A DNA stretch of 64,000 bases from Euprymna scolopes (lineage: Eukaryota), in assembly GCA_053919585.1 (NCBI GenBank), contig CM132786.1; one strand, 5' to 3'. The notes beneath the pieces were generated by a model. The model was not told where the DNA came from and did no database searches. It saw nothing but the letters and a program-made list of their open reading frames with translations. Positions within the stretch are counted from its first letter, which is position 1; each line of letters starts with the position of its first letter. Below are positions 15,798 through 58,684 of this stretch, one piece after another. Both the position numbers and the translations under genes were made by a program.

Positions 15798-15869
15798 GCC
15801 GTGATCGTCTAGAGGTTAGGACCCCACGTTGTGGCCGTGCTAACCTAGGTTCGAATCCTGGTAACAGCA
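15798..15869 (+). tRNA. tRNA-His: tRNA-His (GTG), probably a pseudogene
   Basis: GCCGTGATCGTCTAGAGGTTAGGACCCCACGTTGTGGCCGTGCTAACCTAGGTTCGAATCCTGGTAACAGCA. GTG anticodon, GTTCGAATC B-box and downstream TTTT. Two acceptor-stem mismatches and one anticodon-stem mismatch. Confidence 0.85.
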
Positions 15870-23700: not shown

Positions 23701-24180
23701 GTTAGAGCAATACAGAGAGGGAAAGTAAGAGAGAAAAAGACAGGAAATTTTTTTGTAGTGCACGAAAAGGTAAAGCCGTAACAATTACCCACTAGTATGG
23801 CATCAGGAGGCCCCACCAGAGACTACTGCATGGTCCAGATCTACTCACCAAATGGCAATACAGCAGTCCCAGTACTTTGCGACTGCTGATAGGATAGCAT
23901 CTTTAGTGCTCACTCCAAGGTTCGGGTCCCTGACTATCAGGCGGATAACGTCAGCCCAGACAAAACGTTTACCTCCAGCACCCTTACTAGTGACATGGCC
24001 ACAAGGACAGACATAGAGATAGAAAAATTTCCAACATCTCAGACTACTGTTCATCAAGTACCACCGACCTTTAAGCAGCTTTTTCTTCTCCCTTTGTCAG
24101 ATAAATCACTCATTTAATGAGGACTGAGGGACAAAAAAGGAGAAGCGAGAGTTACTGGAGCTGCCGATAACACATCTATA
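20738..24180 (-). mobile_element. CR1/Zenon-like LINE subfamily A, near full-length and degenerate (5' leader, APE, RT)
   Basis: SILGPTFFLINLNDLP..DIYADET, QYGLCSAKSTAD, SDHSVVS (APE). The 5' leader at about 23700-24180 is shared with 45732-46110 and 52050-52545. Confidence 0.9.
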
Positions 24181-40562: not shown

Positions 40563-43500
40563 GTGAAATAAATAGTTTGTTTTCAAGCAAATTTAAGAGA
40601 GAATTTAAAAAATCAGGAAAACCATGATTATTTTCTTATTAAATCTTATATGACAACACAATTTTAGATTTTATGCGAATTTCGCAACTTTTCTTTTTAT
40701 AAGGAACGCACAAACCTCGCAGCCATCTGTTTATTTTATTTTTCTAAAAATAATTGGAAAACATCTGTTTTTCTTTCGATCCTTTTAAAATTTTAATATG
40801 ATTTTACACTTTAATCTTTTGCCCATTATCTTTTATAAATGAGTCACTACTAATCAAGCCTGGATGCCACTCGAGGATAAGAGTTAATGCGTGCACGGCA
40901 GTCAATGCGACAATATTGTAGTAATCGTTAGTAGTAGAAATTTGGTAAATTGGATCACTTAGGGGGACGGCTAATCAACGTGGGATAACGACCATATAGT
41001 AGCCAGCTAGAAAAGGAAATTGAAGACGGTTCCACATGTGTGTAGTTCAAAGAAAGTAGCTTTGGACATGGAATCTACGCTTATGTTAAGGTTGAGATAA
41101 AGAGTGGAGAATTTATTGATAGTGGATTTGGCTGGACGAGTGTTTTTCGTGAAAGTTTGGGAATGGAGACTATTGATTAGCAGCTTCTCTCATGATGCAG
41201 TAACAGTACTCAATCCTCTGACGTATTTGGTTTTTATACTGGTGGAAAATTGCATCGTCGGTGAGATATCTGATGTAGAATGATTAAACCATTTTCCAGC
41301 ATTCTTGGCTACAGATTTGATGTACGTGTTACATTTCAGATCAAGAGTAAATGTAAGAGCATGAAGTTTATCAAATAATAAAGCCTCCATAAGACGACAG
41401 CCACTCATTTCAATTGATGCCAGAAGGGAGTCAGAGCGTTTTTATGGAAAGATAAAAGCTTCGTTTTAGATGCATCAAAATGAACTAACAACCCATTTTC
41501 CCATTACACCACGTGCTCAAAGTCAGACGAGAGTAAATCAAAGAAATCTTTGTCATTTATGGAGTTTGATCTGTTGCCAAAGATGATAGTGTAATCCGCG
41601 TAAATGTCTACGAATGGTCTTTGCGTGTGATTCGCAAATCTTTGATGTAGATTAGTAAGAGATTCGGGGTCATTATTATCACCTGAAGGAGTTTAGAATA
41701 AATACTGTAAGTGTTCGGTTTCTGTCCATCAACTACTACACTTATAGAACTTACTAAAGAGAGCATACATTTCCAACTACACCGTAGCTCGAGAGCTTGT
41801 GAAGTAGAGATTTATGTCAAACCATATTTTAATATGTCAAGAGCAAGCGCCCTAAAAACGAAGCATGAGATTAAAGAGATTCGCTAATCTTAATGAGATA
41901 TTACTGTTACCACATCTGCTATAAATATAGCAGAACGGAAACCATAATGCATATCACGTAGGAGGGTATTTTTGCTGCATGGCTGATTACTTCTCTTTTC
42001 GTACAGATTCCAGCAACTTAGTAAAGACGCACAGGAAGTTAATTGATCTGTATAGAAAGAGAGATGACCGATCATCTGAATTTTTAAATACACGGAATGC
42101 CGATGAGTTTTCCAGTGTGTTGGAAAGCAATTCTTTTAAAAAAACGCTTAAACAGCTTTTTTAAGTATTGGAGCTAGTTCTGTTTGAAGCTTTTTCAGTA
42201 CTATAATTTGCATGTCAGTATGCCTGTTGCTTTACTGGAATCAATGTTTTCTTTTTTTAGACTGGAAAAATCACACACAGATATTTGTATTTCGCAAAGC
42301 GTGTTTTCAGAAACAGGAGAAAAAACTGGGGTTGTCGGTTTTGATCGCATAGGGTAGAATTAGCTGCGAAGTTTTTGGCTTTGTCCGATGCTAACGAGAT
42401 CACCCCATGTCCATTGATGATGGTTTGGAAAGAGCACACGCTTCTGTTCAAAACTTGTGGGAAACAAACCCCTGCTCAACTATTTCAAACTTGACAGACT
42501 GAGCATATAACTCTCTCGCAGTCTTTATTTCTCTTCTATAGTGATTTCTGGCAGTCCTGAAAGCGGTTTTAGTCTCAGTAAATCTATTTCGTTGAAAGCA
42601 ATGAAACAAAGTGGTTTCTGTGCGCAGTGGCAGTAGAACATTCTAGAGAGTACCACGGCTGATTGTTAGGTCTTTTGCTGGAACATTTGAAGTGAATGAA
42701 GCGGTTAATACCTACAGCTAAACACTCCGTCATGTCTGATAGTATAGATGATACGTTCTTTTTAACATGGATAGCAGATGTATATCAGATATAAATGTAC
42801 CGAAGTTATTTACTCAGTCATGGAGTACGATGAAAAGGTACGTCTGAAAACAGAGTGCATTTTGTTTGTACCTTGTCTAAGACAACCGAGTGGTCGGAGG
42901 ATTCTCGTGAAGACATAAAGGGAGATGAACATAGTCCAGTGCAAGATGCACGAAAATGGTCTATGAGACTTGCATACCAACAGTCTGTGTTTGGCACATA
43001 GGTGGTTTCGAAAACAATCTGAGTTAGGTCAAAAGCAATGGAGAAATTGGGGAAGAACTTCCCTTTATTATCTATCTTGTTTACATAGTGAACATTTATG
43101 TCTTCAACACAGAGAGAGAATGCTAATTATTTTCGCTGATATGCTCTTAAAAACAGAAGCTCCACTGTTTTGAAGGCGATAGAGGGCAAATGCACTTCTG
43201 TGAGCAAGTGCAACCAGGAATCTCATATATGGCAGGTTAGGGTCTTCTCCGGATATTTCTTTACAACATGGAAAGACATCGCTAATGTAGGCACATATTC
43301 TCTGTCAATTGCTATCTTGGGGTTGGATTTTTATGGTACGTTGAGTATCCTTTTATCACGAACTCATCTAGATAAATAGTAGGTCCAATGCCAGTTCCGC
43401 ATGAAAACAAAACGTCTGGTTTGGTCTCCTATAATTGGGTTTCAATCTCTGGAAGGTTGAAATGTAGACTCCTGATGTTGGAAAAGAAAACTTAGAAGTG

Positions 43501-43621
43501 GGGTCTAAAGTGGAAAATAGAGTCCTTGTATTTTTTCTTTCAACTTTTCAGGCAGAAAAATAAAAGCGAAGAAATTATTTTGTATAATAATGATAAGATA
43601 AACCCATAACAATTACCCATT

Positions 43622-45731
43622 TCTAATAGAAAACAAATCTGGACTGCATTTTGTCAGCATTCGAACATTATCAGCTCTGGCCCGTTCAGTCCAGTTCTCC
43701 ATAACTCAACTCAACTTAACTCCCGACGTCTTCACTGACGGACTTATATTCCCTCATTCCAGTGTCTAACTTCATTCATATGCAAATCAGGACGCGATCA
43801 ACCCTAATCATTTGTCGCCTTTTTGTGTCATATCATCAGGTTTCGAGTTCTGAGCGTCGCACATGCCACCCGTGGCAGCCTGCCTCCGTAACTGTAGTCA
43901 CACTCCTCCCTGATCTCATGCTCACAAATAGGACAAGGATGTAGTATCTGTTTTTGTCGGGAACTCCTTAGCAGAAGTGGGGCTTATTCAGAAACATTTG
44001 CTTCCACTTCTGCCTCGTGCAATGCATTTGATTTAGCCTTATCTTCATCGTATCCTAACCTCTCGAACCGCAACTGTTCTACGATACATCGTCAGACCCA
44101 ACTGGCTCACGATAAACCGCCAGTCGCAACTGGCCCACGATACACCACCAGACACAACTGGCCCACGATACTCGGCTGGACACAGAGAATTTAATTTTTA
44201 AATTTCTCATTAAAAAAAAAACGACTTTTTACATACAAGTCGACTGAATCTCATTGTAAGTTTCTTTAATAGCGATGACATTTTCTTAAAAAAAAAACAA
44301 CCAAATCCGACTAGAATTGTACTTTCATTAACATAACTCTTTCGTTTAAAAACGACAACATTTTTCTTTTCAACACAGGATTTTTACAGGTTTTTACATA
44401 TGTACATGGTCAGTTCACCGAAACATTAAAGTCTCACAAAATCTTATTCTTCGTTCTCTCGTTGGCGGCAAGATAGAAGAAAGGGGTCTCCGGGAGCGTG
44501 TGTCTTTCTCAAGATTTAGCTTCAATCTTTCTCTTCCGTCCCGTGTATGCGCTCTTATACAAAGGTCACGAGGTGGGTCTATCGATCTGCTAAACTAATC
44601 AAGGCTAGCCACGTCAAACGGGGAATACCCGACTTCTTTGCGTGTGTGTATTTCAGCAATCCGTCCGCAGTTTCGTAAATTTAGGACCAAAATGTGAAAT
44701 TGTTTTCACATGACCCCAAGGGGTCAAATCCTGTAAATATTCTCTACTCAGAGACCCATAACGTATGAGCGTCCCTCAGGCCAACAAGTCTCGTTTCTAC
44801 ATTAATCCGACATTTCCTGTCATGTTTTAAACAAAAATTATCTGTCTTTTTTACAAAGCACAATGAACTTGTCTCTTTTAATAGGTCACCTGTCGCTATC
44901 CGGGATTCAATTAATGTTTACCGGACAATCTCAGCATATTTACCCGGTCTTACTCAGAGTTTTAGGAGATCTTAAGCTCCCAATGAGGAACAGTATCACT
45001 CCTTGAGACGGTTACGTCATACATACAAGTCGTCCGAATCACATTTAAAGTTATGTATACAGTGACGACTTTTATCAGAAAATATAACCGAATTTCATTC
45101 AAAATTCCTCATTTAAAAACGACTTTTTAATACATACAAGTAGACCGAACTTCATGTTAAGTTCTTTTAAAAGCGACGACTTTTTTCTCCAAAACAAAAA
45201 AAAATCCGACTCGAATTGTACTTTTATCGAAATAATTCTTTCGTCTAAAACCCTAACCTTTTTTTCTTTTATGCACAACAGGATTTCATTTTTAATTCTG
45301 TATTGAAAAACGACTCATTTACCTCTCCCTTTGACAACGCTTTCAACTTTCAACGCGGTTTTTAATTTTCCAGGTTCGACGCGAATCATTTAAAATTTCC
45401 CACTTTTATTTCGGCCGCATCGGATTTATATTTAAAGCCGAAATAGCTTCTAATATAAAAAAAATCTGGACTGGATTCTTGGCAGCTTTCGAACATTCTC
45501 AGCTCTGACCCGTTCAGTCCAATTCTCCATGACTCAAGTTAACTCAATTCCAAACATCTTGCCTGTCGGCCTTATATTCCCTCATTCCAGTGTCTAGCCT
45601 TATTTATATGCAAATCAAGACGCGATAGAACCTTATCATGTGTCGCCTTTTCGTGTCCTATTGGTCAGGTTTCGAGTTCTGAGCGTCGCACATGCTTCCC
45701 TTGGCAGCCTGCCTCCGTGGCTGCAGTCACA
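43622..45731 (-). mobile_element. Non-autonomous LTR retrotransposon (2.1 kb, no recognisable coding region)
   Basis: Diverged direct repeats 43622-43902 and 45449-45731. 5-bp TSD CCATT/CCACT; the empty site ACAATTACCCACTAGT is seen at about 23781. PPT AGGGAGGAG (43903-43911) and PBS AGCTATTTCGGC (45437-45448). Internal 28-bp repeats at about 44068-44180. Confidence 0.85.
45437..45448 (-). promoter_or_regulatory. Primer-binding site complementary to tRNA-Phe nt 1-12
   Basis: The plus strand GCCGAAATAGCT abuts the 5' LTR and is identical to 58141-58152. Confidence 0.8.
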
Positions 45732-47282
45732 CCACTAACATGACATTGAGAAGCCCTTCCCTCAGAATCTACTCTATGGTCGATTTCACCAAATGGCAAA
45801 AAAAAAAACAGCCCCAGTATTTTGGACCCTCTGATAGGATGACCTACTTACTGGTTAATCCAAATTGCGGGTTCCTGACTATAAAGCGAATAAGGCAGCT
45901 CAGCACCCCTATGAGTGATATGGTTATAAGAATAGAAATAGAAAATTTCCGACATCTCATGCAACTGCCTTTTCCGCTGCACTGTCGACATAGAATGCAG
46001 CTTTTTCTTCTACCTTATTCAGAAAAATCACTTCTGCTACATGTGACCTGATTGATAACTTAGGAGAATGAAATTTACTGGAGTTGCCAATAACGCATGC
46101 ACAATAAGTTGTCTCCTTTCAATTAATAATAATAATAAGAAGAAGAAGACGAAGAAGAAGAAGAAGAGGAATAAGACGAAGAAGAAGAAGAAGTATTTTT
46201 ATTGAAAACCTATATTTTGAATGCTAAGTAATACGAATTATTCCCAAATATTATGTCATTACATATGTAAATAATAATAATTTTGAAAAGAATTTCAGAC
46301 GGTAAAAATAATATTGTACCAGCCATTATACGTCCGCTGTATTGGCATCCGGATGAAACACGTTTCACGCACAGACCTAGTGACAACGTAGTCCCCAACT
46401 CCACCTACTCATTTGCTAGTATGTATGATCTTTTTTCTCCATCTTGTATGTGACAGGATAAACATGACAACTAGAAGCAATATGTACTTTATGTGTCTGG
46501 GTTTCTTGTTTTGTATGTTATAAGTACTGATAATCGATAATCGAAAGAATACGATTAAAGAAAGAACATTCCAATTTAACCAAAGTTAAAAGACCTAATT
46601 CATTCTAACATCACAAGTGAGTGTATTCTTTGTCGGACTATTAATAGGCAAAGAAATTGCTTATCTATATCTCTACATTACTTTAAAAGTAAATTGTAGA
46701 AGCTTTATCACTGCACAAGAAGCAACGCACTGCCAATAAAATCATCAATAAATTCGTTGATAAAACAGGAATTCCAGAATAAATGTTTCTGCCTAGAAGC
46801 CAAACTATTATATTTAATTTTAGCATTTTAAACTTAAAGTCATGCCATTATACTTAAATTTATATTGCAATTTCCCTGTTATTCTAATAACAGCCAAACT
46901 GCTATCCAGATTCAACGCTCTCAAAATATTGTAGATCAATAGTTATTTTCATTTGGGAATACTATTTTATCTAATGGCGTTATTCTTGTTATTAGTTGAA
47001 ATTAATGTAACATATGACGTTTCAGAAATGTTATTTTTTCTCATTATAATTTAAATAACAATGAAATAATTAGTTTAAGTTGTTATAAGTCAGTTGGAGA
47101 TACTTTGTATCATGCTTTCAGCTAACTGTCAAGGCAGAAAAAAATACAAAAGCAAAATTGGTTATTATTACGATTACCTTCTATTTTTATTGGGGGTGGG
47201 GGTTATATATTTTCCTATTATACAGGGTAAAATGATAAATTTGTCGATCTAAAGAAAACAAGACTGAAGCTTTATTTTCTAG

Positions 47283-48005
47283 CAAATATTGAGCAATTCT
47301 AATCGAATAGTATTTTGAAACAAATATTGACCAAATTCTATTCGGATAGTATTTTGAAGCAAATATGGAGCAAATTCTATTCGGATAGTATTTTTAAACA
47401 AATATTCAGCAAATTATTTTCGGATAGTATTTTGAAACAAATATTGAGTACATTCTAATCGGATAGTATTTTTAAACAAATATTGAGCAAATTCTATTCG
47501 AATAGTATTTTTAAACAAGTATTGACCAAATTCTATTCGGATAGTATTTTTAAACAAGTATTGACCAAATTCTATTCGGATAGTATTTTAAACAAATATT
47601 GAGAAAATTCTAATCGGATAGTATTTTTAAACAAAAATTTGAGCAAATTCTATTTGAATAGTATTTTTAAACAAATATTGAGCAAATTCTATTCGGATAG
47701 TATTTTGAAACAAATATTGAGCAAATTCTAATCGGATAGTATTTTAAACAAATATTGAGCACATTCTAATCAGATAGTATTTTGAAACAAATATTGACCA
47801 AATTCTATTCGAATAGTATTTTTAAACAAATATCGACCAAATTCTATTCGGATAGTATTTTGAAACAGATATTGAGCAAATTCTAATCGGATAGTATTTT
47901 AAACAAGTATTGACCAAATTCTAATCGAATAGTATTTTGAAACAAATATTGAGAAAATTCTAATCGGATAGTATTTTTAAACAAATATTGAGCAATTCTA
48001 TTCGG
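47283..48005. repeat. Tandem minisatellite of about 39 bp, about 18 copies
   Basis: Unit AAATATTGAGCAAATTCTATTCGGATAGTATTTTTAAAC with single-base variants. Confidence 0.95.
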
Positions 48006-49074
48006 TTAGTAGAGCTGACATCTATTCAATGTAGCTACCTTCAACCTAAATTAACGTCTCGATAAGTGTCTAGAACTGCGAGCATGTTATTTCCATCACG
48101 ATACCGATATTTATTACATTTTACTAAGTGTGACCTCCCGATACGCCGAGTAATATAGCCAAAAGAAGATTAAATATTGAAAACTATGAATAAGCTTATT
48201 TAGTAGATGTTTGGTATATAGAAATTTTCGAAAAAAAATTTCCAGGCCATTTTAGTTATTCTCCGCCGTTAGTTTTTTACCTGTCATATAAATTTCAACG
48301 AAATAGGATTTATTTCAAGTTTAAATAGATTTCCTTAAGCGTAGCTGACTAAGGCATTTAAGACACTTAGAGATTTGGGACCCCTTTTATTATCCGTCAC
48401 ACAATATTTTATACATAGCGTTTAAATATTATTACAATATAAGATGCTTGCAATTGATAAAAAAGAATTATGCTTTCTTAATCACTTCTATAACCATGCA
48501 CTTTTAGATTTTATGTAAATAATCTAACCTTACTTTCTATATGGGACACATAAATACCGTCACGTCTATTGCGTTATATATATATATATATATATACAGA
48601 AGTATTCTACATATAAAGTAAACACATTCGTCTTTATTTCGAGTGTTCTAACATTTAATACTTTTAATGGGTCTTCCTTTAAATTTAAGTCCTATTTTCC
48701 AAAGCTCATACATTGAATGTTGCATAAAACTTCTTTTCTGTCGATTCATACGCAAATAATAGTATTTTCAGTAATAATTGAAAAGAACTTTATGCGGCTG
48801 TAATGATATTATAACCGCGATCTGACGTTTAATGTATTAAATATCACTAACAACACTAGTGTATACACTTTCTTTGAAGCTTCATCTAGCGTGACCAGAT
48901 AATCAAGCAAATATTTGGCACTTTTAGATACATTCAGTGTAATGTGGACTATAGCATATTGTGAACTAAGTCATTGCTGGGTGGCATGTGAAGCTTTATC
49001 CCGGTGCATCGCGATGGGTTCGCAACTAGGGCAGGCAATTACTCAATTTTATTGAAAAGTTAGCGATTTTATTT

Positions 49075-52000: not shown

Positions 52001-52545
52001 ATCGTGTATTTTTTATTGAAACTTTTCATGATGGAGGTTTGGGATTTGTGGAATAGGTCGACAGACTTGCTTGAAGCAGGGCAAAGAGGGAAAGTAAAAG
52101 GATAATAGAAATGAAGAAATATTTTTGTAGCACATGTAAAGCCGTAACAATTACACACTAATATGGCATCGAAAGGCTCCACCAGAAGCTACTGTATGGT
52201 CAAGAATCCATCCACCAAATGACAGTACAGCATCCCCAGTACTTTGCACCTGCTGATAAGACAGCCTCCTTAGTGTTTAATCCAAGGTTTGGGTCCTTGA
52301 ATATCAGGCGGATAACGTCAACCCAGAAAAACGTTTACCTCTAGCACCCTTACTAGTGGCATGGCTACAAGGATAGATAGAAACAGAAAATTTACGACAT
52401 CTCTGGCGGCTGTTCACGCAAAATACTGTCAACCTAGAATAGAGCTTTTTTCTTCTTCCTTCGTCAGAAAAATCACCCATTAAAATATGAGGAGTGAGTG
52501 ACAAATAAGAGTAGCGGGAGCTGCTGATAACGCATCCATAATGCA
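49075..52545 (-). mobile_element. CR1/Zenon-like LINE subfamily A, apparently full length (about 3.5 kb; 5' leader plus a single APE-RT ORF, disrupted)
   Basis: APE start DIRGLRSN..PDILFLSETG (about 51950-51860), then ADWDSFR, QYGFRSARS, ALDISKAFDRV and MEYCCHIWAEA; poly(A) at about 49075. Confidence 0.92.
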
Positions 52546-54496
52546 TCGTCTCTTCTCCATTATAAAAACGTATTGTACTTAATAAAAGTCAATTTGGCGT
52601 GTTTAAGCGAAGGTATGGTGAAAGATTCCCATCTCACTAACTGAAAATGAATATAATTGGCTTATCTGTTTAGGCTATCGACTTGGAACATATAGACAAC
52701 ATTTATGGATAAAACAAATATATTATAAAAAAAATAAAACAATATATATCCAAAATGAACTTGCCAGAGAGAATCGGCACATTTTCAACGAGAAAACTAT
52801 TTACAAAATTATTAAAACAATGAAATAAAGATAAAGTTTTAAAAAACTGAAATAAATATAGTATTAGAATTTGCATCTAGAACAGAAATATTATAAATTA
52901 ATAACTTAACTGCTATAAACGTCCTTCGTGACTGCAAATATACATCATGTTAAATGGCTGGTTCACTCAAAAAGAACGGTTGCAGAAGGGAGATTTTGGA
53001 ATTATGTTTTCTAGGTTTCTTCTGACCTTACTTATAATGTTAAGGGACTTACTAGGGTTCGAGATGCTGATTGACAATAGGCAAATCTTTTAGACTTTTT
53101 TCTAATAACATGCCCTGAATTGTGCTCATTCTCAGTTCTGTTCTGCTAGGATCTTCTGATCACTCGATTATTACAATACAAATACAAACAAAGTATTACT
53201 AAACCACAAATACCTTTCTCTTTCGAACAGTATACTGATACTCGATATTATACTGGTTCGGTTTCAGAACGTCCTATCGAAGCTATCCTTTATTACAAAC
53301 GAATGCGTTTTATATCTATCTTAACTGATTGGATGCATATAGGCCTAGACAGCTATATACTCTCCATAAATTCTAACAGAAACCAACCACTTTCCTTTGG
53401 TAGACTCCTGAATGTGCTGCCTCCATTGCACACAGAAGCCACTACTTCAATTGCTTTAAACGTAATAACAGTTTTAAAACTAAGGTCGCCTATAGAACTG
53501 CTAGCAATCACTCCAAAAGTATTATAGAAAACGCGAGATTATCGTATGCTCATTTTTTTTAATTAGAAGAACAGAAGCTGTGTTTCCATAAGTTTTGGCG
53601 AATAACAAATAAGGTCCTAAATAAATTGAAGTACTCGATCCCGACCATTATCACCGGGCGTGAAGTAATTTCCTAAACATCTGACAGAATAAAACTCTTT
53701 GCCAATAACTTTGCAGCAAACACAACTCCATGTGATCAGGGTTTCACTACCACACTAGTTTCCTCCCAAGAATGAAAATAATCTGAGTGGTATACACATA
53801 TTTGTTCGTGATATTGCTACAGTCACCAATAACATGACAATATTTCACTATTCAATCTGCAATTGAAAGAAGTATTCATTCTTGGAAACATGTTTATCGA
53901 TGCCTGAAAAAGAAATGTTTCACAAATCTTTGGAAAACCTCATTCGTTTTCCCAATATTGAAAAATAGTGAGGATCTGTTCTGTATCTCAGTGATCGTCT
54001 GAGTGTCATGAGTAAGCTGCTTGAATCCGTGTTAAATAGAGAAATTGTAACCACCGCAGCCAAAAGAGCCTACTCAGTCACAAACAATATAGTTTCCATT
54101 CGGAAGGATCGTTTGTCGTTTGCGTGACACTGCTGTCCGAACTTTCACTTTCTGGTCACCACTTGACGCGTCTTCTCTCCACTCCAAAACGAACTTCTGC
54201 AACTTTAGCTTTTCTCTCCCCGAATCCGACTTTTCTCTTCTACAAATACAACTTCTCTGCTCGCAATCTAACTTCAGAATGCCTTCCTTCCCCAAATCAC
54301 TCCTCTTTTATCTCCAATCAGGAGCATCTCATTTGCATACTTCATGGTCACCCTGTAGGCATATAAAGAAACAGGGCAGCCATTTTTGTTTCTTTCTTCT
54401 TCATTATGAACACGAGGTAAGCCACACAAAAACGCGGTCGGTCGTTCTTGTTTCTTTTTTCTTCATTTACACAACACGCCCCCCTGATGTTCGAGA

Positions 54497-57404
54497 TCAA
54501 TAGGATACTTCGTAATCCTCCATCCAAGCAGGCCGCCTCCTCTCACGTCGAGGCCTCTGGGGGACAACTTCTCGGGGGTTTACGTTTTCAGGATCACTAC
54601 AACGCGGGCCTAAGTCAGGTCGAGCAGCATCATTTGCTTCTCGGTGGCCCTCGATTTCCTCTTCTTCACTGCCCTCACTGCATACCGGCAATGTCACGCG
54701 ACGCAGGTCTAAGATATGCCGGGGAACGCCATTCACCATCACATTGTTCTTCGACTGCAATCCTGTTACGACCCCTCTTTTCCAACGAGTGGTACACTGT
54801 GCATTGGGGGGTTTCACCCACACCTCTTCACCTACTTTGATAGTGGCTTCTTCACTCTCAATTCCTGCTGTTTTGTTGCACGGATGCCGCCACTTATATG
54901 TGAAAACGGCCCTATGAGGCACAGTTGTCTCATCTTGTTTGGTCTTCAGCGAGATGTTATACCAAAACACCGCCTCTATGGGTGATACGTTGCTTTTTTC
55001 CGCAGCGGCTTTAATGGTGCGATGATTCCTCTCCACTATTCCGTTGCCACTCGGCCGATACGCTGCTCTGAAAAATTGCCTTACTCCCCACTTATCACAC
55101 ACCCCTTTAAAGGCTTCTGATCGGAAAGCGGGGCCATTGTCCATTAAGAGTTCCTCAACCGGCCCTCTCTCCAAAAATATCTCCTCGATGACCCCTCCGA
55201 TCGCCCATGCAGCTTCTGCCCTGATCTCTCTCCAGATGGCAAACCTTCCCGGTCCACAGTCGACCATCGACAGATACAATTTGTGGCGATAGTGTGTCAC
55301 ATCAATGGCCAATCGCTTCCAGTCCTACGCAACGTGTAGCTCTCCTGCTTCGTGTCTGGACGGTCCAGGGTCAATTGATTGGCACTCTCGACAGTTCTCC
55401 ACCACCTCTCTAACCTCCTCCTCGGTGGTCTCCGGGTAAACCTCTCTGGCTAGGAATAACGTTCGTTCTCGACCAAAGTGGTGCATTTCGTGTGACTCTT
55501 TGACTTCTTCCCCTGCACAGCATACCGAGGAGACCTCCTTTCCCTCCTGCAGCCAGGCCTTCTTCACGCGTGTCATCGAATCCGCCTTGTTTTTTTTCTG
55601 ACGGGACCAACACAACAGATACTCTCAACTGGAATTCCGCTATCAGGTCGGTGAGCGCTCCGAGTCTGCGCTTGATCAGCATTTCCGCAGCACCCCTGGT
55701 CTTAACTCTCTTATCGCCAGTTACTGCCGACCGAATCCACGACGCTACCGTTGCCGAATCGGTTTTGACTTCAATTATTTTCAATCCCCATTTCAGGGCC
55801 AGATTGATTCCTTTTATAGCGGCATCTAGTTCTGCTACGTTGATATGGGAGAAGTCGTTGTTTTTTCTTAGCCACGCCGCATCCTCCACAGTTACACCTC
55901 CTATCTCTAGTACGACGCCCAACGCCAGGTTACTGGCATCGCACCAAACCACACCCGCGTCTTCGCCGCTGACATACCATTTCCCTTTCACTGGGTCCTC
56001 ATTCCTCACTCTCGCAATGACTTCTTGCAGCATGTTCATGACGTCCTTCGTCACACGGCCCTTCCAGCCATCAGTGCCTGTTTGTCGTTTAATGAAGCTG
56101 CATGCTATCCTGAGCCAGCCAGCGATAGGATAGTGCCCGACCAGCCTCCCTCAGACTGAGAAGAGTTCTCGCCTCTTCACCTCAGATCCGACTTCGGGTA
56201 TTGCATTCCCTCGTTCGAAGACAAGGCTTTCTTTTCCATCTCGCCTTAGTTTCAACCCCAGCACCGCTCCTCCATCTAGGGCCTCCGCCGGTTTTGCAGT
56301 TAACCCATACTTCTCGACATGGCTTCTTACTTTCTCTCCTGTCACCTCCGCCTCCTCCACCAGGATGTCGTCAATGTATGAACTAGTGGCCTCCTCCACT
56401 GTACAGTCTTTGCTCAGCACTGTTTTCAGCACGGCAGTCATAATTTTGGGGGCTGAACTTAGCCCAAAGCCTAACCTCGTCAGACAATACACGCGCCCCT
56501 TGTACCGGACCAGTTTGTACTGCCAGAGTTTTTCATCTACATGGATCTGCAGATATGCCGATTTCAGATCGACAATCTTAGTGGCCCGCCCCATTCTTCT
56601 CCATTTCCTCATGACCTCCTCACATACGTCGATCCCCGTTCCAGTGTGGCAGGCTACGTGTCTGTTCAATTCCCTAAAATCCAGCACGGGCCTAATCTTG
56701 TTTTTGGTAGGCTGAACAACCGCCAGTAGTGCCAGCACTCCTTTTTCTTCCCCTGTCTACGGTTTCAGAATTCCTTCTTTTATCCACCTCTCCACTTCTT
56801 CCTCGAATCCTTTTCTTATTTCTCCTCGCATGGTGTTTTCGTAGCAGCCCACCTTATTCTGTAGTTCTGGGGGCCCGGAGATCCATTTCCATTCCACCGT
56901 CCACCTCACGCCATCAAACTTCGCCAGGAAATCGTTGTCCTCAATGCAGCAAACCTCCGGTTTTGGGGTTCTGACGGTTCTATCACCTTCCACTCCTGCC
57001 ATCCCCACTGCGCCGAGACGTCCAAACGTCACTTGGCCCCCTCTTAACGTAGCGCCCCCCAGTCGGTTAATTGCACTCATACCTATAATCACGTCGACAC
57101 CACCGACCAGATGATTCAACACTAGGGCTTGCAGTCCAATGGGCACCCCTTGCACCATTACTTCCGCTGTCGTCTCTCCTAAGCATTTCACATCCCTGCC
57201 ATCCACGGTCCTAATAATCCTGGTTCCGCTCCATGACCTCGCGACATTCCTCGCTAACAACGTTGTAGTGCAGCCTGTGTCGACAAGGGCTATGGCTCTC
57301 TTCCAATTGACTACTACCGGTAACCGAGGCAATGTTCCATCATGCGCCATTTCCACACAAAAGGGGTAACCACTGGCGTAATAGCTCCCCTTCACTCGTT
57401 TCCC
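54497..57404 (-). pseudogene. pol: Gypsy Pol (protease, RT, RNase H, integrase) with three in-frame stops and one frameshift
   Basis: ALVDTGC (PR); RPVLDFRELN, DLKSAYLQI, LGFGLSSAP, YIDD (RT); WCDAS, NVAELDA, KTDS (RH); HEMHH..CREC, AIDVTH, LMDNG, GIVER (IN). Stops at 56757, 56151 and 55325; frameshift in the A-run near 55590. Confidence 0.93.
57345..57404 (-). promoter_or_regulatory. -1 programmed ribosomal frameshift signal (G GGA AAC plus putative pseudoknot)
   Basis: Slippery heptamer at 57404-57398 in the gag frame just before the gag stop, with pol in the -1 frame. Downstream stem AAGGGG/CCCCUU has loop CGCCA complementary to a later UGGCG. Confidence 0.75.
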
Positions 57405-58123
57405 TGGTCCCGTGCAGCAACACAATAGCGGCTAATATGCCCCACTTGTCCACATCGGTAGCACGTGATCCCTGGTCTCGGCTCTTTGCAGTCCTTGATC
57501 AGATGAGGACCCTGGCACCGGAAACACTTGATAGCAGGTCTCCCCTCCTGTCGCCTCGCCGGCTGCCTCTCATTCAAGTGAGGCCTCATGCACATATTTC
57601 CACTCATAGCTGCAGCCACGATTGGGCTTTTAACATTTTTCACTAGGACTCTGGCGTGGACCAAGAGATCGTCCACTTCCATAGAATGGATCCCCGTGAT
57701 TCTCTGCATGTTCGCAGAGACGTCCTCTGGGAAGCCATTCACTAGGTACAGCTTTACCGTCATCTCCAGGCTCCTCCCCACGTAACCAGCCAACCCTGCC
57801 AGTCTCCTGATCTCTGCCGCAAAGACGTCAACGGACTCGCCGGTCCACCTCAAACTTGACAGCTTTCCAAGTGCTTGAAATGGGCCCTCAGCGAAGGCCA
57901 ATTTCAGCCTTTGCTCCACTAAGGCAAGGTCTTCCTTGTCTTCATCTCGCATATGCTGGTAAATCGTGAGGGCTTCCCCCTCTAAGTATAGCGGCAGCAG
58001 GGTGACCACATCTTCTATCTTTTGCAGCTTCGCCACCATTTTTAATTTCTCCAGCCACTTAATCAGGTCACCCTCCCCAGTAAAGGGTCTCAACATCTGA
58101 GTGCTCAGTCTCCACTCAGCCAT
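57392..58123 (-). CDS. gag: Gypsy Gag, 243 aa, with two zinc knuckles
   Basis: Intact ORF 29 nt after the 5' LTR; CFRCQGPHLIKDC and CYRCGQVGHISRYC. Confidence 0.92.
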   Translation of the reverse strand: MAEWRLSTQMLRPFTGEGDLIKWLEKLKMVAKLQKIEDVVTLLPLYLEGEALTIYQHMRDEDKEDLALVEQRLKLAFAEGPFQALGKLSSLRWTGESVDVFAAEIRRLAGLAGYVGRSLEMTVKLYLVNGFPEDVSANMQRITGIHSMEVDDLLVHARVLVKNVKSPIVAAAMSGNMCMRPHLNERQPARRQEGRPAIKCFRCQGPHLIKDCKEPRPGITCYRCGQVGHISRYCVAARDQGNE

Positions 58124-58140
58124 GTTAATTTGCTTGATGT

Positions 58141-58152
58141 GCCGAAATAGCT
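58141..58152 (-). promoter_or_regulatory. Non-canonical primer-binding site complementary to tRNA-Phe nt 1-12
   Basis: AGCTATTTCGGC immediately follows the 5' LTR, with no TGG-type PBS. Its reverse complement GCCGAAATAGCT is the 5' end of metazoan tRNA-Phe(GAA). Confidence 0.85.
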
Positions 58153-58684
58153 TGTCGTTTGCGTGATACTGCTGTCCGAACTTTCACTTTCTGGTCACCA
58201 CTTGACGCGTCTTCTCTCCACTCCAAAACGAACTTCTGCAACTTTAGCTTTTCTCTCCCCGAATCCGACTTTTCTCTTCTACAAATACAACTTCTCTGCT
58301 CGCAATCTAACTTCAGAATGCCTTCCTTCCCCAAATCACTCCTCTTTTATCTCCAATCAGGAGAATCTCATTTGCATACCTCATGGTCACCCTGTAGGCA
58401 TATAAAGAAACAGGGCAGCCATTTTTGTTTCTTTCTTCTTCATTATGAACACGAGGTAAGCCACACAAAAACGCGGTCGGTCGTTCTTGTTTATTTTTTC
58501 TTCATTTACACCACATCGTTCACAGATGAACTGATGTTAATTACACATAAGATCGGTTAATCTATTAACGCAATACCTCTCTTAAGAGCAATAGCTCTTG
58601 ACATATTGAAGGCATTTGGTATAAAGCTTTGAAATAGAAGTCTGCTTCATAAAATTTTCAGCTATGGTATTTCCAGAATATTTT

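Follow-up and report, generated by a model that had tools for sequence, protein, structure and literature searches.

Two questions are raised by positions 43622 to 45731 of a 64,000-nt stretch of Euprymna scolopes DNA (contig CM132786.1, assembly GCA_053919585.1), hereafter called the window: what kind of element lies there, and what could prime its reverse transcription? A preliminary description, made from the sequence letters, had taken this segment for a non-autonomous element with long terminal repeats (LTRs), older than a coding LTR element at 54114-58515 but of the same lineage, and had pointed to a 12-mer behind the LTR, corresponding to the 5′ end of tRNA-Phe, as a required cis signal used by at least two families. 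Our analysis identified the segment, with high probability, as an old and fixed member of a family of non-autonomous LTR retrotransposons, which is the best explanation as a whole. The more far-reaching proposal is a tentative one, in which our confidence stays somewhat short of even: a group of invertebrate LTR elements may prime from nucleotides 1-12 of tRNA-Phe cut after U12, with a primer site that tracks positions 5-6 of the host tRNA, and the non-coding family may represent its minimal cis set.

A dispersed LTR family without coding capacity

By blastn, two direct repeats (43621-43903 and 45448-45732) with 85.3% identity were detected. After refinement of the boundaries, they proved to be LTRs of 283 and 281 bp that are 85.8% identical (Kimura two-parameter distance, K2P, of 0.159). 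Read in sense, the 5′ LTR (45731 down to 45449) is immediately followed by the 12-mer AGCTATTTCGGC, while at the other end of the interior ATCAGGGAGGAG (43914-43903), a polypurine tract, precedes the 3′ LTR. The joined flanks were aligned with two sister copies of the surrounding host repeat, both of which have an empty site. Compared to these, the filled site contains exactly five extra bases, indicating a single insertion with a 5-bp target site duplication (TSD; Table 1). Both junctions were spanned by contigs of independent public runs. The longest open reading frame (ORF) of the element comprises 60 amino acids, and tblastn searches with gag and pol pieces of the 54114-58515 element gave no match. 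Thus, the diverged repeats of approximately 282 bp, the TSD with its empty sites and the polypurine tract were all described correctly before, with outer limits exact to the base. The interior is indeed non-coding and lacks gag and pol, but the notion of duplicated blocks was too simple, as it is composed of two tandem arrays and a nested foreign repeat.

The 5′ LTR together with the leader was used as a query against the 5.9-Gb genome. Out of 1,187 candidates obtained at first look, 40 were scored, all of which turned out to be relatives (75-86% identity). Complete copies are 1.25-1.85 kb long and reside at unrelated loci, and no similarity to gag or pol was found in them. Their TSDs are their own, a perfect ATAAC in L033 and duplications matching at four of five positions in L038 and L045, and the two LTRs of a single copy, that of the window included, differ by K2P values of 0.085-0.159. 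The interior is made up of a conserved leader, ~190-nt units and a 28-nt array, both variable in number, and a short unique 3′ part; the copy at L067 contains four to five of the ~190-nt units. These results bear out the classification as a non-autonomous LTR element. At least three subfamilies exist: that of the window copy, one with an LTR start lying 17 nt earlier, and one with a slightly altered leader. In the second of these, which comprises L036, L039, L043, L047, L055 and L067, TGTAGGGAAAATTGTAG precedes TGTGAC, and the polypurine tract is shifted to match.

The excess length of the window copy over the other copies is due to the nested repeat at 44384-45021. For this repeat 3,296 first-look candidates were recorded, and all 28 sampled loci cover that stretch only. 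Its full-length copies (~0.9 kb, aligned) begin with TGTGACAGG and end with CGTYATA. They may be solo LTRs or resemble short interspersed nuclear elements (SINE-like).

The 12-mer and the 5′ end of tRNA-Phe

A canonical primer site, complementary to a tRNA 3′ end and starting with TGG, is absent from the element. The 12-mer that abuts the 5′ LTR occurs twice within the window, each time at an LTR junction. The tRNA-Phe genes of the genome begin with GCCGAAATAGCT (645 exact 5′ 25-mers, typed as Phe(GAA) by ARAGORN), and to nucleotides 1-12 of this tRNA AGCTATTTCGGC is exactly complementary; a primer site for the 5′ end of tRNA-Phe had been named in the preliminary description. The match ends at nucleotide 12, since the preceding LTR base, which would face C13, is an A. 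A 12/12 match starting at nucleotide 1 of the tRNA has a chance probability of about 1e-5. The 5′ end of tRNA-Phe is the sole known RNA with the complementary sequence. The genes encoding this tRNA form very large arrays (C28, ~101.70-101.72 Mb; C18, ~100.09-105.52 Mb), in which many are spaced by 219 bp.

In 18 other copies of the non-coding family, the letter of AGCTATTTCGGC is the majority state at all 12 positions, and eight copies have retained it exactly. Most of the changes are transitions, four of them at the CpG. When conservation was tabulated against the neighboring bases, as had been suggested, the mean majority share amounted to 0.94 for the 12-mer compared to 0.89-0.90 for its surroundings. 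The majority state at each position indicates that the source copies of the family possessed the 12-mer, which was then lost near-neutrally by dead copies. Together with their TSDs, these copies agree with the earlier expectation for further family members.

Exact junctions of TTAGA, the LTR end of the family, with the 12-mer were found 282 times in the genome and not at all in the control. In 151 of the 282, the next base is unlike that of the family, and 20 junctions sampled from these 151 belong to non-coding relatives and to four gag-bearing types. With the LTR end CA in front of the 12-mer, 5,481 genome matches were counted compared to a single one for the reversed control. Twenty of these junctions, picked one after another along a single contig, represent about ten LTR families whose LTR ends and leaders are unalignable, so that the earlier figure of at least two families was an understatement. 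Nearly all of the 20 have a gag ATG 3-35 nt downstream. A third coding family, which was met by chance through pol similarity within L067, contains the 12-mer with one change at the CpG. Conservation stops sharply at both edges of the 12-mer; the base that follows varies among families and may be A, C, G or T. This retention across families that cannot be aligned otherwise strongly suggests that the 12-mer is a required cis signal.

A search of the genome for reverse transcriptase (RT) returned solely the young family of the 54114-58515 element, hence it did not permit a comparison across families. For a sample blind to the primer site, a single copy with an uninterrupted pol frame provided the query, and metagenome contigs were scanned by help of a pol alignment, which yielded 69 loci. 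The pol relatives are 50-58% identical, proteins from Argonauta hians, Oratosquilla oratoria and Petrolisthes manimaculis among them. In 28 of the 69 metagenome loci AGCTATNNCGGC is present, right after a CA or GA end and shortly before the gag ATG; the opposite strand gave one match, and 0.22 are expected by chance. Most of the other contigs end short of the region of the primer site. Variation of the motif is limited to its seventh and eighth letters, which face acceptor-stem positions 5-6 of tRNA-Phe: NN reads TT in eleven loci, CG in seven, CA in five, CC in four and TA in one. Locus L163 (within L110-L178) exhibits a 13-nt form of the motif. The CA, CC and CG forms are nearly absent from the Euprymna genome: of 521 matches, the first 100 contained four of them and 96 products of decay by a single transition. 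Such variation is what would be predicted if the site adapted to the tRNA-Phe of each host.

A possible primer and its alternatives

The window copy has kept nothing but features that have to act in cis: two LTRs with promoter-like motifs, the 12-nt primer site, the conserved leader, the polypurine tract, and LTR ends usable by an integrase that makes 5-bp duplications. Gag and Pol must have been supplied in trans by coding elements of the same primer-site group, of which the 54114-58515 element is a young member. According to our proposal, the 12-mer would bind the 5′ end of tRNA-Phe. Since priming needs a 3′ OH at U12, the tRNA would have to be cut there, most simply by the RNase H of the element at the end of the 12-bp duplex. 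The resulting 12-nt primer would place its 3′ OH next to U5. According to Levin's work, the RNase H of Tf1 reportedly makes such a cut in the element's own RNA, where an RNA duplex ends. The sharp edges of conservation would follow from a primer exactly 12 nt long. We regard these three steps, that is binding of the 5′ end, cleavage after U12 and priming by the 12-nt piece, as about evenly poised between right and wrong.

Several points weigh against this proposal. For a primer to end at U12, the tRNA would have to be cut within its D stem, and fragments of this class are not known. Priming by a 12-nt piece of tRNA-Phe is deduced from sequence data. The decay of the 12-mer within the non-coding family is near-neutral and gives no weight for selection. 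Covariation of the NN letters with the tRNA-Phe of the hosts is a prediction, and a literature search for published tRNA sequences fitting the variants gave nothing usable. Both LTRs of the window copy, and those of the family generally, end in TG...GA and not in TG...CA; some gag-bearing relatives likewise end in TTAGA. Finally, a coding element that shares the LTR was not found. The coding families obtained from the 20 sampled TTAGA junctions have LTRs of another kind, and the search for an autonomous partner that the preliminary description had called for was in vain.

Priming might alternatively do without tRNA-Phe, either by self-priming through a fold-back or by way of another host RNA or a protein that recognises the motif, and the match to the tRNA would then be an inherited relic. 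In favor of this unlikely explanation, the leader of the non-coding family contains GCCGAAAT, to which the 3′ 8 nt of the 12-mer are complementary with one G-U pair, so that a hairpin with a loop of 21 nt could form. This downstream complement covers the last 8-9 nt of the 12-mer (duplex z -2.9; 94.7% of the cells paired), and fungal GalEa elements and the miniature terminal-repeat retrotransposons (TRIMs) of bivalves have been reported to possess hairpin sites at the primer position (PMC5445492, PMC6934838). However, the pairing does not show covariation, and the coding families lack it, 17 of 19 leaders giving a z of ~0. The predicted pairing is therefore a trait of the non-coding family and not a general mechanism. 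The consensus fold of the leader (alignment A2) is weak as well (-3.9 kcal/mol) with almost no covariation. Self-priming of the Tf1 type, from the LTR, was rejected, since the best complements of the 12-mer in five LTRs reached 7-9 of 12 positions, equal to shuffled sequences. The exact 12/12 match from the first tRNA nucleotide argues against the explanation, and so does the fact that distant relatives vary only where the motif faces acceptor-stem positions 5-6.

We consider it very improbable that the 12-mer is a passive ancestral passenger, dispensable for mobility. The near-neutral rate at which it decays within the non-coding family would suit a passenger, but a passenger would diverge along with its surroundings. 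The exact sequence and exact position of the 12-mer in about ten families with unalignable LTRs and leaders count against this reading, and the site was also kept in relatives sharing only 40-55% of their pol residues. That the window copy is a decayed coding element, a notion to which the similarity of the last ~35 nt ahead of the polypurine tract to a pol gene end might give rise, or that its repeats are a local segmental duplication, is scarcely credible, given that all sampled family copies are non-coding, share the size range, leader and tandem arrays, and lie at different loci with their own 5-bp duplications, and that the empty sister sites speak for one insertion; a local tandem duplication is ruled out by the same dispersed copies, TSDs and empty sites. 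Sister or orthologous sites with the two repeats as a mere duplication lacking the interior, as well as family copies devoid of a TSD, were sought and did not turn up.

Coding relatives and known systems

With an LTR K2P of 0.014, compared to 0.159 for the window copy, the element at 54114-58515 is clearly the younger one, in line with the relative age assigned before. Its family numbers 27,233 RT candidates, the best 150 of which are 95-97% identical. Two overlapping frames encode gag and pol, the latter with DUF7047 and an RNase H that matches RVT_3/RNase_H and not the usual gypsy models. Searches of solved structures with the RT and RNase H pieces were uninformative. A relationship to Odin retrotransposons was not supported, as a dual RNase H is missing and Odin has been reported from sea anemones only. 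No LTR homology (z ~0) was detected between the non-coding family and either the 54114-58515 element or the coding element at L067, and its interior is not homologous to the gag-bearing families past the 17-18 nt of the junction. The claim of a common lineage therefore holds for the wider primer-site group, but not for the LTRs, which cannot be aligned with those of the 54114-58515 element.

The sole significant similarity to a coding element extends over 73 nt (72.6%, E 5e-7) and comprises the pol end, the polypurine tract and the beginning of the LTR in the coding family at L067; this family is the closest coding match. Its K2P of 0.113 points to an age similar to that of the non-coding family. 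As the 54114-58515 family is young and the L067 family is of matching age, the helper is more likely to be an older relative. The candidate helpers have the domain order gag, protease (PR), RT, RNase H, integrase (IN), which is the order of Ty3/gypsy elements, while the window element is protein-less. An echo of the autonomous element next to the polypurine tract (CCCTGAT..AATAGGA) had been noted earlier and is present as written. Its polypurine half is a family trait, the core ATCAGGG being common to the other family copies and to both coding elements compared; AATAGGA is peculiar to the window copy, as other family copies read differently there. At L067 (2739-6984, C10), the coding element, whose LTRs are 89.7% identical, sits within a family copy's 28-nt array and is oriented alike. 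A matching 5-bp duplication is missing there, which suggests recombination over a simple nested insertion.

To our knowledge, there are few exceptions to priming from the 3′ end of a tRNA, namely half-tRNAs in copia-type elements and self-priming in Tf1. The primer of copia, Ty5 and Tca2 is a 5′ tRNA piece instead of the 3′ CCA end, and their sites pair with the anticodon-arm region in a fragment of ~39 nt from initiator tRNA-Met or tRNA-Arg. Our proposal resembles these systems in the putative 5′ tRNA piece. It differs from them in the use of tRNA-Phe nucleotides 1-12 and in coding relatives with Ty3/gypsy domain order. With Tf1 and sushi elements, the self-priming of Tf1 being summarised in PMC5445492, the family shares a short primer site right after the LTR (11 nt in Tf1, 12 nt here), but what this site complements is a host tRNA's 5′ end and not the start of the element's own RNA.

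Primer sites of a non-canonical type have been described before in GalEa elements of fungi and TRIMs of bivalves. The Copia Conserved Hairpin Site of GalEa consists of a short inverted repeat whose halves are 12-41 nt apart, with one imperfect pair (PMC5445492). The non-coding family is alike in a non-canonical site at the primer position with a predicted pairing (8 bp across 21 nt, one G-U pair). The sequence is another one, however, and the GalEa site does not match a tRNA. A conserved hairpin right after the 5′ LTR would be expected in every member of such a group; here the pairing is present in the non-coding family and missing from the coding families. TRIMs and other small non-autonomous elements of plants, ants and bivalves share with the family the direct repeats, the lack of gag and pol, the positions of primer site and polypurine tract, the 5-bp duplication, the many dispersed copies and a helper that often is not identifiable (PMC6934838). 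The limits of TRIMs are a total length of <1 kb and terminal repeats of 100-250 bp (PMC6934838). The window copy with 2,110 bp and an LTR of 283 bp exceeds both, and the family (1.25-1.85 kb) differs furthermore by variable tandem arrays inside and by a primer site complementary to a tRNA 5′ end.

If true, the proposal would add a further mode of priming, which thousands of copies would use within one genome, as would their relatives among cephalopods, crustaceans and eukaryotes of unidentified kind. Everything that the non-coding family has kept counts as a candidate cis requirement, including the 12-mer retained exactly at the LTR edge. Annotation pipelines and the large surveys published recently restrict their search to tRNA 3′ ends (PMC13524379), and standard annotation would for this reason miss a primer site for a tRNA 5′ end. 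In the literature on the 12-mer sequence, on unusual primer sites and on tRNA-Phe primer sites, the coverage of which was incomplete so that novelty is unproven, no description was found.

Features of the window

Table 1. Positions of the element, its parts and the compared features in the window
Feature	Position	Strand	Remarks
Whole element	43622-45731	-	LTR retrotransposon copy, 2,110 bp
Left TSD copy, CCATT	43617-43621		Alignment with two empty sister sites; one change compared to ancestral CCACT
3′ LTR, 281 bp	43622-43902	-	85.8% identical to 45449-45731; sense start TGTGAC, end TTAGA
Polypurine tract, sense ATCAGGGAGGAG	43903-43914	-	Adjoins 3′ LTR on the upstream side
3′ unique interior	43915-44080	-	Last ~35 nt similar to pol end and polypurine region of L067 coding family
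28-nt tandem array, 3.2 copies	44081-44171	-	Tandem Repeats Finder; 5-6 copies in L067 copy
One unit of ~190-nt internal tandem repeat	44187-44383	-	75% identity to 45090-45286
Nested shortened foreign repeat, ~640 of ~900 bp, non-coding, high-copy	44384-45021		Outside the family; other family copies without it
~190-nt repeat, partial unit (45022-45091) and full unit (45092-45316)	45022-45316	-	
Leader, conserved across subfamilies	45317-45436	-	Contains GCCGAAAT in sense at 45408-45415
12-mer at primer-binding position, sense AGCTATTTCGGC	45437-45448	-	Complement of tRNA-Phe nucleotides 1-12
5′ LTR, 283 bp	45449-45731	-	Sense order CCAAT, octamer motif, TATAAA
Right TSD copy, CCACT	45732-45736		Alignment with empty sister sites
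Empty site CCACT in sister host-repeat copy	23789-23793		Alignment with joined flanks
Empty site ACACT in second sister host-repeat copy	52155-52159		Alignment with joined flanks
Comparison element: young coding LTR element with gag, PR, RT, RNase H, IN	54114-58515	-	12-mer at 58141-58152; 5-bp duplication TCGTT

The host repeat flanking the insertion is old and degenerate, has a length of at least 3 kb and is represented by several copies in the window that are 67-70% alike. One of its ORFs gave a weak match to RVT_1 below the Pfam cut-off; a long interspersed nuclear element (LINE) is a plausible assignment. A contig from run X7, which is labelled as a second organism, covers the left junction (window 43448-43646) with zero to three differences and a 66-nt indel. 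Given this contig, the insertion may be shared with a close relative.

Elsewhere in the window, a tandem array with a period of ~78 bp and units that are 88-90% alike was found at 47273-48011, and a tRNA-His(GTG) gene is located at 15798-15869.
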